Counted from the first letter of the stretch, positions 66 to 48,422 are shown. The stretch: 64,000 bases of DNA from Octopus sinensis (GCF_006345805.1 NC_043007.1:48050001-48114000); one strand, 5' to 3'. Notes: generated by a model not told the origin, from the sequence alone. Translations and numbers: made by a program.

Positions 66-156
66 TACTGGGATAATGACTTGGAATATGTTGCTCAGAA
101 ATGGGCAGAAAATTGCAAGTTTAATCATGAGAATGCATATCGACGAATAATACCTG
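66..156 (+). CDS. Module 1 CAP exon A: [30 protein letters not shown](G)
   Basis: ttttcag acceptor, gtaag donor; CAP W..L...AQ.WA..C.F.H motif. Confidence 0.93.
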
Positions 157-3100
157 GTAAGAATATAAATTACTTTATATTGTAAAGCATTTCTTTTTGA
201 AAACGGATTTCAGAAAATTTCATTTCAATGCATATCACTGTTTTATTCAAAATTAATAAAATATACAATGGTTTCTAATATAAGCATAAGACCAGAATTA
301 ATCAGGAAAGCGGGGTTTTGGAATACATTAGCACAAGTATTTTGCTGGTATTTTATTTTATTTTATTAACCTCAAAAGGATGAACAGCAAAGCTGATCTT
401 GGCAGGATTCGAAAACAATGTAAAGAGACATAACTAAATACTGTGAGGCACTCAGACAATTTCGCCAAACCACCATGGAAAGAATGTAATATAAAATATA
501 TTTTGGGAATTCTCATCTCATCTTCCACGTCCAATTACTCTTGGGAGGATCGTAGGGACAGAGTCCTCAAGCATGCCTTTCATCAGGTCCTGTCATAAGC
601 AACTGCTTCCAATCGATCAGGCTGTATCTCTAAGCTATATCAACTGAATTCATAGATGCTATCCGACCATCCTGCTTGTGGTACCTCTGCTTCTCTTACT
701 GGTTGGCTTTGCCCATAAAAACTACCCAGCAAGTCTTTCCTGAGACATTCTTACCACACAGCCGTAGTGTCAGAGTAGTAATCTCTCAATTCAAATCACT
801 ACTCCAACTACTTGGAGCACCACACTGATCTCTATGCTACACACTGTATCGAGAAATGCTATTCCAAAGACTCTTGGAGGAGTCCCATCACAGCTGATTG
901 TGTTCGTGATCTTATTATTTCAGTCATTACCAAAGATTCATGACCATCGGTAAAGGTAGACACGAACACCGAATTAAAGATAGCGAGTTTGGCTTTCATA
1001 CCTACCTCCCTCCTTCTAATGACCAATGCAGAAGTTGGTGCATTACTGTGCCAGATCCTGCAATTCTTGCATTTGATTCAGCCGCCTACCTTCCATCACT
1101 CCTGAAAGCGGCCCTGAAATACTTGAAATTCTCCACCTGCTTCACTGGAACTCCACTCACTTGTAAAGTGCATTGCATAAGCTTCCCTGAGTGGATGGGC
1201 TCCCTATCTGGGCAGCACTGATTTTCATTTCTACTGAACAGCACTCAGCAGCAAACCTGTCAAGCACATGCTGGAAATGACCTTCTGACAAACTGAGTAG
1301 TACTATGTCATCTGCAAGTTCCAGTCAACTGATGCCATACCTCCAGCCCCAATACCAGTTTTAGCCCAGCTGCGCATGTCAATCCAGTCCATGAAGATTA
1401 TGAAAGGAGAGGTGACAGTACGCAACTTTGCTGGAGTGCAACATCCACATTGATCCTTTTGCACTTATGTGCTCACCTGTGTGTGTATGTATGTATATAT
1501 GTATGTATGTGCATGTATATATATGTGTATATATATATATATATATATATATATATATATATATATATATATATATATATATATATATATATATATATAT
1601 ATATATTATATATATATATATATGCATATATGTATGCATACATACATATATGCATTCACTAAGAACTGTAATAAATTATTGTAGTTATTTGGTCAATAGG
1701 GTGTTAACTAATGAAGGTGTTGATGATTGTGGGGTAGTCTTTTCTAAGTAGTAAGGAATTACTCTGAACAATATATTTTGTGCATGGACTGAAATCTAAA
1801 TGAAATACAGTATGATGTAACACTTGCATGTTTGTGCAAGTAATTGTCATTGAGTAATGTCATTTTTACTGCCACCACTAACATAACTACCAACTTCAAA
1901 CAATAGTCATGACAGGCAACAACCAAGAATAATCATCAATTTTTCATTGTCATCTCATTTTTCCTTTTTTTCTTCTCTGGCTTCTTTCTTTATCTCCTAT
2001 TCTCTCTCTCTCTCTCACTCACTCTCTCTCTCTCTCTCTCTCTCTCTCTCTCTCTCTCTCTCTCTCTCTCTCTCTCTCTCTCTACTCCTTCTTCTATCTC
2101 TCATGAGCTACTTCCCTTAACATGATGCAGAAAGTATGTAGGAACATATTATTGTACTAATGCATAGATGATTATACCCTGTCATATAAAATCTGCCTTG
2201 TCTCACAGTATGACATTGCTATAAAGGGTACATGCATCAGAAGAATACTAAACCATTTAAATACTAATTCAATGAGCCAAGTAGCTCAGTTGATCAAACA
2301 CATTCACAGTCATAAAATCAAATTGACACGCATTTACTTTTAATTTCATTATAAAGCAATAATTAATGATTACAGGGAAGAAAAGAAATTTGGCTCAGTC
2401 ATAAGGATACAGAATTTGATTGTTAAAGTGTTTTTAAATATTTTTCTTTAGGTAAATTTAGTGTTGGACAAAATTTGGCTCTTGGATACATAAACTGGTC
2501 ACATGCTGTAAGCGGCTGGTATGGGGAAATAAAAGATTTCACCTATAACACATCAAATGTACTTCATAAAGTAGGACATTACACACAGGTAAGAATAATC
2601 TATTTTATACATCCAAGCTTATTAAAATGCCTGAGTATTGTGGAAAATAAATAGTTGTATTCTAGATAAAAAAAGATGTCACACTTTGGTAAAAGATAAA
2701 AAGAGAAAAGACCAGAAGTTATCAAGATATTTTAGAAGAAAAAGACTTTACAGTTATTCAGGATCAAATATTTTATTCTGAAACATCTGAATTGTAATTA
2801 GAATTTTCAGTATTTCAAAAGTGATTTTTCCAACTTATATATAGTTGCTATTATGTTAAACTGTTGTATGTCCAAATTTGGTGAAATGCATTTTTTTCAA
2901 TATTTATTTTTGCTTGCAATAGCCAGTTCTTTTGGTCAAACTATTGTATCTCAGCTGATTCAGATGCCAAGATATCAACAATTGTCAAAGTGTAGTACAA
3001 CAATTTTACTATGGAATGGTGAAACTGTTTTTCCCTTTTCAGAAAAAGCAACATTTTGGACTTAGACAATTTTGCATAATAGCAACGATATCCATCTTAT

Positions 3101-6100
3101 TGACACCCCACAAATTCTCATAGATTTAGACATATTTTACCTTCATAAAGAAAGATCTAATGAAGTATATCAATGTAAATGTGGTGAACCTGATGAAAGA
3201 GAGTATGTGGGAAGTTAGAGTTCCCTAGACTAAAATGTATGTATTACTTAGATGTATGTATTACTTGGATGGTGGATATAAGGTTTTAAGTATATTTTCA
3301 ATTTTACAGCTGGTCTGGGCAAGCTCTGCTGCTATTGGCTGTGGATACGCTGATTGCAAGGGTGTAGGAAGATTGTATGTATGTAACTATGGTCCAGCGT
3401 AAGTCAATGCTTTCAATCTCTTTATATTATTGCATTTTGGTGTTTGGCCAAAATGTATGTTTGGTTTTTCTTGACATTAAACTTGAGGCCCTCCAGTAAG
3501 TAGCTACCTTAAGTTTGTCTCTTGCACATCACCACTCATTAGAGACTTGATGCTTCCACATACTTTGTCACAAGTTGGCAATCAGACAAGTTGTATTTAG
3601 TGTGCTTGAGATCACTCTGAAAATGGAGGACTGAACTAAACATTATCAACACTTCATGTATTTTTATTTTAAGAAATGGCAACAAAAGCAGTAGAATCGT
3701 TCAGGAAGATATATGCTGTGTATGGAAAGGATGCAGGTACTGAATGTATGTGTCAGAAATAGTTTCCAAGTTTACATTCCAGACATTTCGTGGCTCAAAA
3801 TGCACCTCATTCTGGCCAGCCAACTGAGATTTACAAGCAATATCAACACCCATTATATGACAAGGATGATTGCAGATAATCCCTAAATATCCAAACTAAG
3901 TCTTCAATACAAACCATCTGCATCAACTTGGTGATGTGAGCAGGTTCAGTGTTTGGGTCCCACATGAATTGAATGAAAGTAAACTTGGCCAATGGATTTC
4001 CATTGGTGATTCATGGTAGAAATATGAAGAAAACTATCCTTTTTCCAAGGGAATGATAACACAGGATGTAAAATGGGTCATCTATAACAATGTGAAGTGC
4101 AAAAGATTATGAGGGAAGTCCAGTGAACATAATCATCATCATCATTATTGTTGAATGTCCGCTTTCCATGCAGTCAAACAGTTTGACTGAAGACTGGCAA
4201 GCCAGGAGGCTGACCAGGCTCCAATCTGTAACCTCCAATGCAGGAGTTCACACACAACAATTATGCTTTGAATTTAGTGGGACTGGAAGAGTGTTATCTT
4301 TTACTAGCTTCTCCCCATATACAGGACCAACAATTTGGATGTGTACTGTGCCAATCCATAAATTAAATACAGCAAGCCACCTGAAATATTTACCACTCTC
4401 TAATTGTAAGGACATTGTCTTTCATTACAACAAAGCTAGACCACACATCTTTGCAGACATAACAGAAATTACTGGGACTTGGTTGAGAAGTTTTTCTACT
4501 CTCACCATATTTGTCACCTTTGCACCTTCTAATTTCCACCTGCTTTGGTTTCTTCATTGAATGGAAAAAGCTTCAACATGAAGCAGATATAAAAATTCAC
4601 CTGGGAGAGTTTTTGCCAGTAAAGTCAAGAAATTTTCGTACCAGAGTATAATGGAAGTGCCCACAAGATGGCAGAAGACCCTGCAGTGAAATAGTAATTT
4701 TATTAGTGATTGAATTAATTGCATGTGTATCATTTTTGTTGAAAACAGCCAAATGGACTTTGCAACCATCTCAATGTTATTTCATGTCCATTTTTGTTTT
4801 ATCTCAAGCAGACTTCTGATTAAGTGTATTCCAGTCATGACAATCTAGACCATTTTTTTAGCTATTATACACCTCACTACACCTAATGCGTCTTTCCTTG
4901 AAGAGAATGATATGAGGGTGATATGGGAATTGCATCTAGCTAGCACAGTGATTACACAGCTATTGATTTCATGTTGGTAATAAATCTGTCGCATAAAATT
5001 AAGGAAAATTTGCAGACACATGAGATGAATTATAATTTTTTTTTATAATGTTAATATCTTTATGTTCTGAATTCAAATTCTATTGTGGCCAACTTAGCAT
5101 TTCATCCTTTCGATGTTGATAAAATAAATACCAGTTGAACACTGTGGTTGATGTAATTGATTTACCCACTTCCTCAAAATTGCTGGCCTCAAGCCAAACT
5201 TTGAAGTTAATATTTATTCAAAGTTTCAGTCACTTTGATCTCTAACCTCATCTACCTCTATTTCTGAATAGGTACCTGAATGTTCTTAAAAGTTATTTAA
5301 ACCTCTATACACAATCATATCTAAAATAAATCTTGGGGACATTCAAAATTAAGGTTATCCAAACTGACAAACCCTCTATAACTACCAGCAGGTACATTTT
5401 CTGTGTCCTCTTACTCATCTCCAATCATTGTAATGACTCCTGCTCCATTGATATTGTAAAATATGTAAAAAAATATCTATCATACCTCATCCACATCCAC
5501 ACAACTCCTCTTTCTGTTGTTTTCTCCTTACTATCTTTCAGCATTCAAAAATCTGCTCTAAATATTTTCCCAAACTTTTATCCTCAGAATTATAAACATC
5601 TTGAACTATCTTGCTGCCCAGGTTTTCTCAAAATAGGTTAACATGCAAGAATTGAAACTGAACTTATCGAAAATACTCTCTCTTTTACAAGAAAGCTTGC
5701 AAAGGCCATGGACATTACTTTATATTCTTTATACTTAAAGGTGAAAGTAAAAAAAAAAAAATTATCCTTAAGAAACTAGAGTAGTCACATACTCTTAAGT
5801 TTTTGATTTCTCCAACATATTGTATGCTTTTTCATCCTGGGATGAGTAAGTGGCTAGTTCATATACAAGTTTCATAAATATTGATTTGTCTATGATAGAA
5901 GTGAAAAGATAATGAATTCCTTACTAAGTATATTATTGTTCATCTTTACCTTCCATTTCTTTTCATGTGTAAATTGTGTAGCCTACACTTTTCCTTTCAG
6001 TTCCTACATATCAATAGACTTTTACAAATTCTATTTCTACATTAATAAATAGAGGAAATACTTTGATGAAAATTATTTATATTAAACTTGTCTCACCAAA

Positions 6101-48000: not shown

Positions 48001-48318
48001 TATTAGATTATTAAATCATAATAACAAATATTTTATAATATAGTAAGATTGACATGATACATCTTCCTCCATCTTTCTTTATTCTATCTCTCCTATTCTT
48101 TACTATTATACTCTCTTTCTCTTCCTCTCTCTATATATATGTATGTGGGGGTTTTATATATATGGATCTATCTGGAGGATTATCTGTTTCTCTCCCTCTT
48201 CCTTTTCTTCTAAGTCTTCCATCTGTCTTCACCTTATCTATTTCACTTCACTTCAAACTTCTATTGCAATTTTATATAATTTATTTTATGTAAATTTTAT
48301 TTTTCTTCATCTATTAAG

Positions 48319-48422
48319 ATTTATCTAGTTCTATGAAGCCCTCTTCATTAAAAGATACTATTATTATTACTACTACGACTATTGTTCCAAATACTACTAC
48401 TACTACATCTGCATTCACTCAG
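48319..48422 (+). CDS. Probable second linker exon: (N)LSSSMKPSSLKDTIIITTTTIVPNTTTTTSAFTQ
   Basis: Pyrimidine tract plus ctattaag acceptor; strong CAG|gtaaga donor; open in phase 1 to 0 exactly like linker exon 12940-12986; Ser/Thr-rich. Confidence 0.55.

Follow-up and report, generated by a model that had tools for sequence, protein, structure and literature searches.

The window studied here, a stretch of 64,000 nucleotides (nt) from Octopus sinensis (chromosome C11:48,050,001-48,114,000), is most probably an internal part of a long gene for a protein that starts with a putative signal peptide, has six units of ~255 residues each and ends in a hydrophobic C-terminal tail. What we show in favor of this reading is the exon structure with its phases, a duplication that links the two units in the window, the lack of a 5' exon for the second of them, and colinearity with annotated proteins. 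Each unit is spread over eight small exons; its N-terminal cysteine (Cys) motif and CAP domain are followed by two six-Cys knots, the first EGF-like and the second ShK-like. The window, whose positions are counted from its first letter, holds the last six exons of unit 3 (module 'A'), and the whole of unit 4 (module 'B'), together with the 47-nt exon between them and a single T-rich linker exon; unit 5 falls beyond its end. The first three parts of unit 3 lie before the window, and the unit is complete once 20 kb of upstream DNA is added.

To place the exons, we used stop-to-stop reading frames together with tblastn searches with exon peptides, and the boundaries were then set on AG/GT; the hinge exon of each unit, required by the frame, was found by motif search. 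Indeed, the 15 exons that an initial annotation of this DNA had reported to splice in frame (six of unit 3, the linker exon, and eight of unit 4) were all found at their places with AG/GT flanks, and they splice into 1420 nt, or 473 codons, with zero stops. The three junctions it had named (11387-12940, 12986-13632 and 15039-22705) are exactly those of our rebuilt chain. Its end point at 48422 is the real donor of a sixteenth, T-rich exon, but the fifteenth exon reaches only to 34624. The phases agree throughout the junction between the units, in that the 117-nt ShK-like exon has phase 1 at both ends, the 47-nt exon leads from 1 to 0, and the N-terminal exon begins in 0. The Pfam CAP profile (PF00188) matches in two stretches, covering positions 1-117 of 117 with E = 1.7e-42 and 145 bits against a cut-off of 21.1. 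Because of this two-stretch match, and because every exon matches relatives, the 15-exon chain is not a chance product.

Among 1.84 billion representative proteins, the top match, far above the rest, was a protein of 1934 amino acids (aa) matched in six stretches, namely CAI9730330.1, annotated as 'uncharacterized protein LOC115217114 isoform X4 [Octopus vulgaris]'. This protein has a start that is signal-peptide-like by eye (MLGKKVHQLLLMMALFGLFAKSLQ), six units of 254-256 aa with 20 Cys in five of them and 22 in the last, linkers of 18-87 aa, and a tail (..ALKQMFIVSAAVSCYFLIPSSI). The hydrophobic nature of the tail and the T-rich nature of the linkers were likewise judged by eye, and apart from exon 48319-48422 these parts lie beyond the window. 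Residues 742-1249 map exon by exon onto positions 66-48422 with 95-100% identity, and with 100% identity over the 47-nt linker. The name of the entry shows LOC115217114 to be a multi-isoform RefSeq locus of O. sinensis. The O. vulgaris annotation pipeline drew on Iso-Seq and RNA-seq data as well as on protein alignments and ab initio models (PMC10700109), any of which may stand behind this gene. In O. bimaculoides, XP_052827668.1 (553 aa) aligns without a gap across the junction ..CNLCP-SAVIPHVKSEPSNPNL-KNCPRKYH.., with an equivalent linker of 16 residues. A six-unit CAP/EGF-like/ShK-like chain is therefore already predicted as an 'uncharacterized protein' in public Octopus annotations. To the initial annotation the architecture had seemed undescribed. 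Our literature search for LOC115217114 and LOC106883929 found no paper mentioning either locus, but the architecture is present in uncharacterized Octopus models and, with two modules, in Haliotis.

A genome search located six exon sets matching the unit protein, all on the + strand, in C11:47.94-48.18 Mb, and the array is ~250 kb long; units 1 and 6 of O. sinensis are known from protein matches to C11 rather than from reading of the DNA. Looking upstream and beyond the window brings the module count, first put at two or more, to six; a putative signal peptide precedes the first module, and the last is followed by a hydrophobic tail.

The 47-nt exon is a genuine dedicated linker unit, present only in front of units 3 and 4. 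Its donor flank occurs only twice in the 2.7-Gb genome, once before each of these units. The two copies are of equal length and have a near-identical acceptor region, and the donor G together with the next 25 nt (26 nt) is identical. The body of the exon differs at 22 of the 47 positions without any indel, compared with an intron divergence of 5.8%, and this block of divergence is bounded exactly by AG and GT. By inspection of the sequences, the predicted frame is the only one of the three that is open in both copies. This pattern suggests diversifying selection or a patchwork history, for example gene conversion of the flanks. At the equivalent position, the N-terminal exons of units 2 and 5 are preceded by longer linker exons (..SLVKTSLKAELEESALGYS.).

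Within 11388-13631, two scans looked for an ATG exon that has both a hydrophobic stretch and a usable donor; they found none and returned translated microsatellites only. It had been claimed that neither a signal-peptide exon nor a stop lies between the modules; the former holds in this interval, but the path is stop-free only when spliced, given a TAA 9 nt past the ShK-like donors and a TGA 27 nt past the 47-nt donor. The concatenation of at least two modules in one protein is nevertheless borne out, as unit 4 has no 5' exon of its own, the phases fit, the 47-nt exon is conserved and the Octopus gene models contain the junction.

Two other candidates in this connection were tried and rejected. 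If the 47-nt exon were the terminal exon of unit 3, read-through of its donor would give a peptide ended by the TGA; this was ruled out by the presence of the same exon upstream of unit 3, by its absence after unit 4, and by the annotated proteins, which splice onward. An apparent promoter plus signal-peptide exon upstream of unit 3, in a sequence present three times in the array (47982023, 48028857 and 48030003), was dismissed upon translation and alignment: in each case the hydrophobic ATG open reading frame (ORF) is the polypyrimidine tract before a 57-nt, phase 1-1, T-rich linker exon ending CAACAG/GTAAGT.

In the self-comparison of the window, positions 1-12108 are homologous to 22642-35162 with 88-96.6% identity. 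The duplicated segment begins ~40 bp before the 47-nt exon and continues for ~700 bp past the ShK-like exon, and therefore no promoter or signal-peptide exon was copied with unit 4. With ~5% silent or intron divergence, units 3 and 4 are the youngest duplication of the array. Between them, the exons (mini-exon excluded) are 6.5% divergent and the introns 5.8%, and the introns carry 3.7 indels per kb, as against one indel only, in frame, in the exons. All 20 Cys, all splice sites and the open frame are kept in both units. From the divergence and the indel rates we infer a joint probability of roughly 1e-4 for such intactness under neutrality, and both units appear to be under structural constraint. 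Within the ShK-like exon, the ratio of non-synonymous to synonymous substitution rates (dN/dS) is 4.9 (10.5 non-synonymous vs 0.5 synonymous differences), with all six Cys kept, though the excess over 1 is not significant with the 51 substitutions between the units. When the replacements were polarized with the O. bimaculoides orthologue, 17 fell on unit 3 and 6 on unit 4, and 8 of the 17 sit in the ShK-like exon (11271-11387 vs 34508-34624). Unit 4, the copy without a 5' exon, is thus the better conserved one, which is the opposite of the expectation for a dead partial duplicate.

Units 2 and 5 are followed by a stalk exon (Y-A-D/N-Y..) and then by T-rich exons. The Tyr codon of the stalk is split T/AT across the phase-1 donor of the ShK-like exon, and CP-Y-A-D follows the last Cys in Octopus, Haliotis and bivalve relatives; because the split Tyr reproduces this motif, the donor must be regarded as ancestral and functional, and not as a chance GT before a stop. 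After unit 4 a relic of the stalk exon is found, in which an in-frame TAG follows three codons (SAA-stop) and the donor GT is changed to GC. The T-rich exon at 48319-48422 has stayed intact, and the next linker exons past the window lie at C11 48121240 and 48123382. At all four ShK-like exons examined (units 2, 3, 4 and 5), the intron starts with GT(A/G)AGTAA and thereby places an in-frame TAA 9 nt past the donor. Such a TAA might serve to end translation of transcripts that are unspliced or read through, or it may reflect the donor consensus plus chance. In the six-unit O. vulgaris protein CAI9730330.1, R-x-K/R-R is absent throughout, and KR and RR are absent from all linkers.

As for the nature of a single unit, Pfam had been expected to report CAP, EGF and ShK twice each. 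CAP is indeed found twice, but neither EGF nor ShK is detected: PF01549 (ShK) has no match at E<=1 in the two-unit protein or in its isolated C-terminal 75 aa, EGF has none in the two-unit protein, and neither was detected at E<=0.01 in 35 relatives. The EGF-like and ShKT labels should accordingly be read as assignments from Cys spacing and the literature, not from Pfam. The ShK-like exon, read directly from the sequence, has six Cys ending in C-x3-C-x2-C (e.g. ..ICPKTCNLC), and the EGF-like exon, a class label that rests on spacing, has C-x4-C-x10-C-x-C-x-C-x10-C. Molluscan type II CAP-ShK proteins are described as CAP plus EGF-like plus a 'poorly recognizable ShKT' (Gerdol et al., 2019; PMC6409789), which the lack of Pfam matches for ShK and EGF fits. 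The octopus unit matches CreCAP-ShK4 with 36% identity and 100% coverage (E ~1e-41) and CreCAP-ShK6 with 100% coverage (E 4e-40), and the matches further include numerous 'Mr30-like' proteins and a single 'Tex31' protein. By full-length homology, the relatives of the unit are the molluscan CAP-ShK type II proteins. An AlphaFold2 model of unit 4 reached a predicted local distance difference test score of 95.6 and a predicted template modelling score of 0.92; in a Foldseek search its top 49 PDB matches were all CAP proteins, the best being snake-venom cysteine-rich secretory proteins (CRISPs), aligned over almost the full length of the unit. The predicted unit has the alpha-beta-alpha sandwich of the CAP superfamily.

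Paralogues of the unit also occur elsewhere in the genome. A cluster of at least five intronless single-unit copies lies on C1 at 109.29-109.37 Mb. For three of them the ORF is 296-307 aa long and has a signal peptide and a hydrophobic C-terminal tail of its own, and one copy is broken by a TAG. The cluster resembles an older branch of the family, either retro-copied or lacking introns.

A plausible mechanism for the growth of the array follows from the phases. The ShK-like exon of every unit ends in phase 1 at a consensus donor, and a short linker exon before every unit takes up phase 1 and passes phase 0 to the N-terminal exon. A unit plus its linker therefore forms a phase-symmetric cassette, and further tandem copies of it leave the reading frame open. 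Unit 4 arose by tandem copying of such a segment without promoter or signal-peptide exon. The mature product would be an unprocessed, multivalent extracellular protein with its units on T/S/P-rich, probably O-glycosylated (mucin-like) stalks, and the six-unit form would probably be tethered by a glycosylphosphatidylinositol (GPI) anchor, its C-terminus resembling a GPI-anchor signal. The CAP units could then act in parallel, e.g. by binding lipids, sterols or surface ligands like other CAP proteins. Shorter secreted isoforms are possible as well: the TAA after the ShK-like exons and the short O. bimaculoides isoforms leave room for truncated secreted forms.

One challenge to a single gene, already named in the initial annotation as what would refute it, is that units 3 and 4 might be two tandem single-unit genes, with unit 3 stopping at the TAA past 11387 and unit 4 having its own promoter and signal-peptide exon. 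The TAA does stand in frame directly after the ShK-like exon, unit 3 has an AATAAA ~95 nt further on, and most other mollusc relatives, like the C1 intronless paralogues, are single-unit proteins of ~300-350 aa. However, the AATAAA is not kept in unit 4, 2 or 5 whereas the GTRAGT donor is, and the phase-1-split residue after the last Cys-Pro of the relatives (CP-Y-A-D) marks this donor as ancestral and functional. The 2.2 kb between the units hold no hydrophobic ATG exon with a usable donor, and the duplication begins ~40 bp before the 47-nt exon, so that a promoter or first exon was not copied. Moreover, the annotated Octopus proteins cross the junction, and unit 4, without a 5' exon, is the better conserved copy. 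We therefore regard two separate genes as very unlikely. A similarly small chance is left to a polyprotein precursor from which cleavage at the linkers would release six separate toxin-like CAP proteins, in keeping with the 'processed' protein suggested in the initial annotation. Repeated units with flexible linkers resemble precursor designs, and CAP/CRISP proteins occur in cephalopod salivary-gland venom extracts (bioRxiv 10.64898/2026.04.09.716377). Cleavage by proprotein convertases is, however, disfavored by the lack of R-x-K/R-R anywhere and of KR or RR in any linker. The T/S/P-rich linkers are like O-glycosylated mucin stalks, the tail is typical of a GPI-anchor signal, single-unit bivalve relatives also have a stalk and a hydrophobic tail, and oyster type II CAP-ShK genes are mantle-specific and not venom-related (PMC6409789).

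A less sharply opposed possibility is that there is one gene, but that the six-unit protein is only one of its products, and that read-through and polyadenylation at GTRAGTAA, cassette skipping and cross-unit splicing yield a family of one- to six-unit proteins, some secreted and some anchored. This we hold possible, though clearly the lesser prospect. All unit-plus-linker cassettes are phase-symmetric, a stop stands 9 nt past the donor of each ShK-like exon examined, the name of the O. vulgaris entry refers to 'isoform X4' of the locus in O. sinensis, and O. bimaculoides has short isoforms ending by read-through of a linker donor as well as the 553-aa model, which mixes exons of two units. 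On the other hand, these are gene models, and hybrid models are a typical artefact of near-identical repeated exons. Taken further, the same elements might amount to a combinatorial cassette system, in which skipping, cross-unit splicing and the choice between splicing and read-through at GTRAGTAA produce short secreted and long anchored proteins of one to six units, and in which units 3 and 4 and the hyper-divergent linker exon are under diversifying selection; this extended version is rather doubtful.

The O. bimaculoides hybrid model can be described more closely. In XP_052827668.1 the N-terminal and first CAP exons come from one unit and the later exons from the last unit, and the older XP_014791245/6 place another N-terminal pair before the same later exons; the cause is either alternative splicing across units or an artefact of modelling repeated exons. 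Older O. bimaculoides models of the same gene begin inside a linker, with an ATG in the polypyrimidine tract (MHFSFSDADY..), which is how a wrongly split multi-unit gene would look.

Several observations weigh against a single six-unit protein as the favored reading. Read-through and polyadenylation at the TAA after the ShK-like exons would, judging from the sequence, yield truncated products, and a short annotated O. bimaculoides isoform is terminated by read-through of a linker-exon donor (..TTGK-stop). The stalk exon of unit 2 is 56 nt long in O. sinensis (..ACTTTG; C11:~48020262-48020317), while 57 nt are implied by O. vulgaris, where the protein reads ..KPVATF-A.., and the copy of this exon in unit 5 ends ..ACTTTTG and is 57 nt long. 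A stalk of 56 nt would break the frame between units 2 and 3 and is probably a homopolymer assembly error. For units 3 vs 4 as a whole, dN/dS is 1.63, which with 51 substitutions is not significantly different from 1. The multi-unit models, which together with comparative sequence form the support, stem from pipelines able to fuse tandem duplicates. No transcript-derived ORF matched a 146-aa fragment centered on the unit 3-4 junction, and no high-identity single- or double-unit O. sinensis protein was among the matches returned by the protein searches. Finally, the GPI anchor, the glycosylation and any function are matters that we only infer.

Table 1. Exons, stops and related features of the octopus multi-unit CAP gene (window positions unless a sequence name is given).
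Feature	Position	Strand	Remarks
Unit 3, 47-nt linker exon	C11:48035079-48035125	+	
Unit 3, N-terminal exon	C11:48036139-48036214	+	
Unit 3, first CAP exon	C11:48046088-48046179	+	
Unit 3, CAP exon	66-156	+	Phase 0 to 1; 100% to CAI9730330.1 residues 742-773
Unit 3, CAP exon	2452-2588	+	Splice chain and match to CAI9730330.1
Unit 3, CAP exon	3310-3398	+	Splice chain and match to CAI9730330.1
Unit 3, end of CAP domain / hinge exon	8953-9017	+	Motif search, frame, CAI9730330.1
Unit 3, six-Cys EGF-like exon	9250-9351	+	Cys pattern; without Pfam EGF match
Unit 3, six-Cys ShK-like exon	11271-11387	+	117 nt; phase 1 to 1; donor CAA/GTAAGT
47-nt linker exon joining units 3 and 4	12940-12986	+	Phase 1 to 0; 100% to CAI9730330.1 residues 943-957
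Unit 4, N-terminal exon	13632-13710	+	Splice chain and CAI9730330.1
Unit 4, first CAP exon	14948-15039	+	Splice chain and CAI9730330.1
Unit 4, CAP exon	22705-22795	+	Splice chain and CAI9730330.1
Unit 4, CAP exon	27741-27877	+	Splice chain and CAI9730330.1
Unit 4, CAP exon	28601-28689	+	Splice chain and CAI9730330.1
Unit 4, end of CAP domain / hinge exon	31982-32046	+	Motif search, CAI9730330.1
Unit 4, EGF-like exon	32279-32380	+	Splice chain and CAI9730330.1
Unit 4, ShK-like exon	34508-34624	+	Donor CAA/GTGAGT; splice chain and CAI9730330.1
Decayed 'YADY..' stalk exon after unit 4	47509-47570	+	Skipped by O. vulgaris model
T-rich mucin-like linker exon towards unit 5	48319-48422	+	(N)LSSSMKPSSLKDTIIITTTTIVPNTTTTTSAFTQ; phase 1 to 0
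TAA sites past ShK-like donors	11388-11396; 34625-34633; L033:5038-5046 (unit 2); L034:4339-4347 (unit 5)		..SSK-stop, ..PSE-stop, ..PCK-stop

Overall, the window is AT-rich (~35% G+C) and contains many microsatellites and transposon remnants. A non-LTR (long terminal repeat) retrotransposon remnant (Pfam RVT_1 E = 2.5e-20, with a weak match to zf-RVT) lies on the - strand at 18372-21038, within an intron of unit 4 that is 7.7 kb long. A 95% identical copy is located in the matching intron of unit 3 (C11:48039909-48042655), and this insertion is therefore older than the duplication. A remnant of a Mos1/mariner-type transposase on the + strand at 7483-8455 (Pfam HTH_48 E = 8e-13; DDE-like) sits in a unit 3 intron of 5.5 kb and has no counterpart in the matching unit 4 intron of 3.3 kb. 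Finally, imperfect tandem and inverted repeats rich in (TA)n take up ~1.8 kb at 39466-41280 and are the dominant feature in the self-comparison.

Proteins of the CAP/CRISP type are commonly regarded as small and secreted, with a single domain, and as acting in venoms, reproduction and host-parasite contact. If our favored reading is true, the octopus six-unit, mucin-linked and probably membrane-tethered protein is a multivalent and so far unstudied member of the family. Multi-CAP chains as such are already known (double-domain ASPs and Lucilia DD1), and two-unit relatives exist in abalone. A role in venom, suggested in the initial annotation, is no more than a candidate function of the six-unit protein. 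The locus is also a clean example of a phase-symmetric exon block lengthening a protein by tandem duplication, in which the newest pair of units is more different in exons than in introns. For annotation, the lesson is that such tandem arrays should not be split into 'cysteine-rich venom protein' genes, as was done in the older O. bimaculoides models.

Counterparts in architecture are found in Haliotis, where gene models of 628-647 aa from three species (H. asinina; H. rubra, LOC124262302; H. rufescens, LOC124111278) comprise a signal peptide and two complete units, with a short K/P/T-rich linker between the units and, after the second, a stalk and a hydrophobic C-terminus. These models cover 98-99% of the two-unit query with 37-40% identity, but they have two units where the octopus has six; we found no published description of them. 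Our protein search also returned many multi-CAP models from other phyla. The hookworm Na-ASP-1 (PDB 3nt8) and LCSc0-DD1 of Lucilia cuprina (PMC7694928) resemble the octopus protein in having more than one CAP per secreted chain and in belonging to tandem-expanded families. In these different lineages, with lower similarity, the two CAPs however follow each other directly, and EGF-like and ShK-like knots as well as mucin-like linkers are lacking. At the level of a single unit, Conus Mr30 and Tex31 and the CreCAP-ShK4-7 proteins of Cumia/Colubraria share with the octopus the order of CAP followed by EGF-like and ShKT-like six-Cys motifs; they are single-CAP proteins of ~300-450 aa, each with its own signal peptide, whereas the octopus chain has six units, dedicated linker exons and a hydrophobic tail. 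The CRISPs stecrisp (1rc9), triflin (1wvr), pseudecin (2ddb) and natrin (1xta) likewise combine a CAP domain with a C-terminal Cys-rich region, and they align to the unit 4 model over 228-251 columns (Foldseek E 1e-14 to 1e-16, template modelling scores ~0.55/0.66). Unlike the octopus protein they are single units, their C-terminal part is formed by a hinge and an ICR domain, and the root-mean-square deviation of 7-8 A reflects a different domain arrangement.

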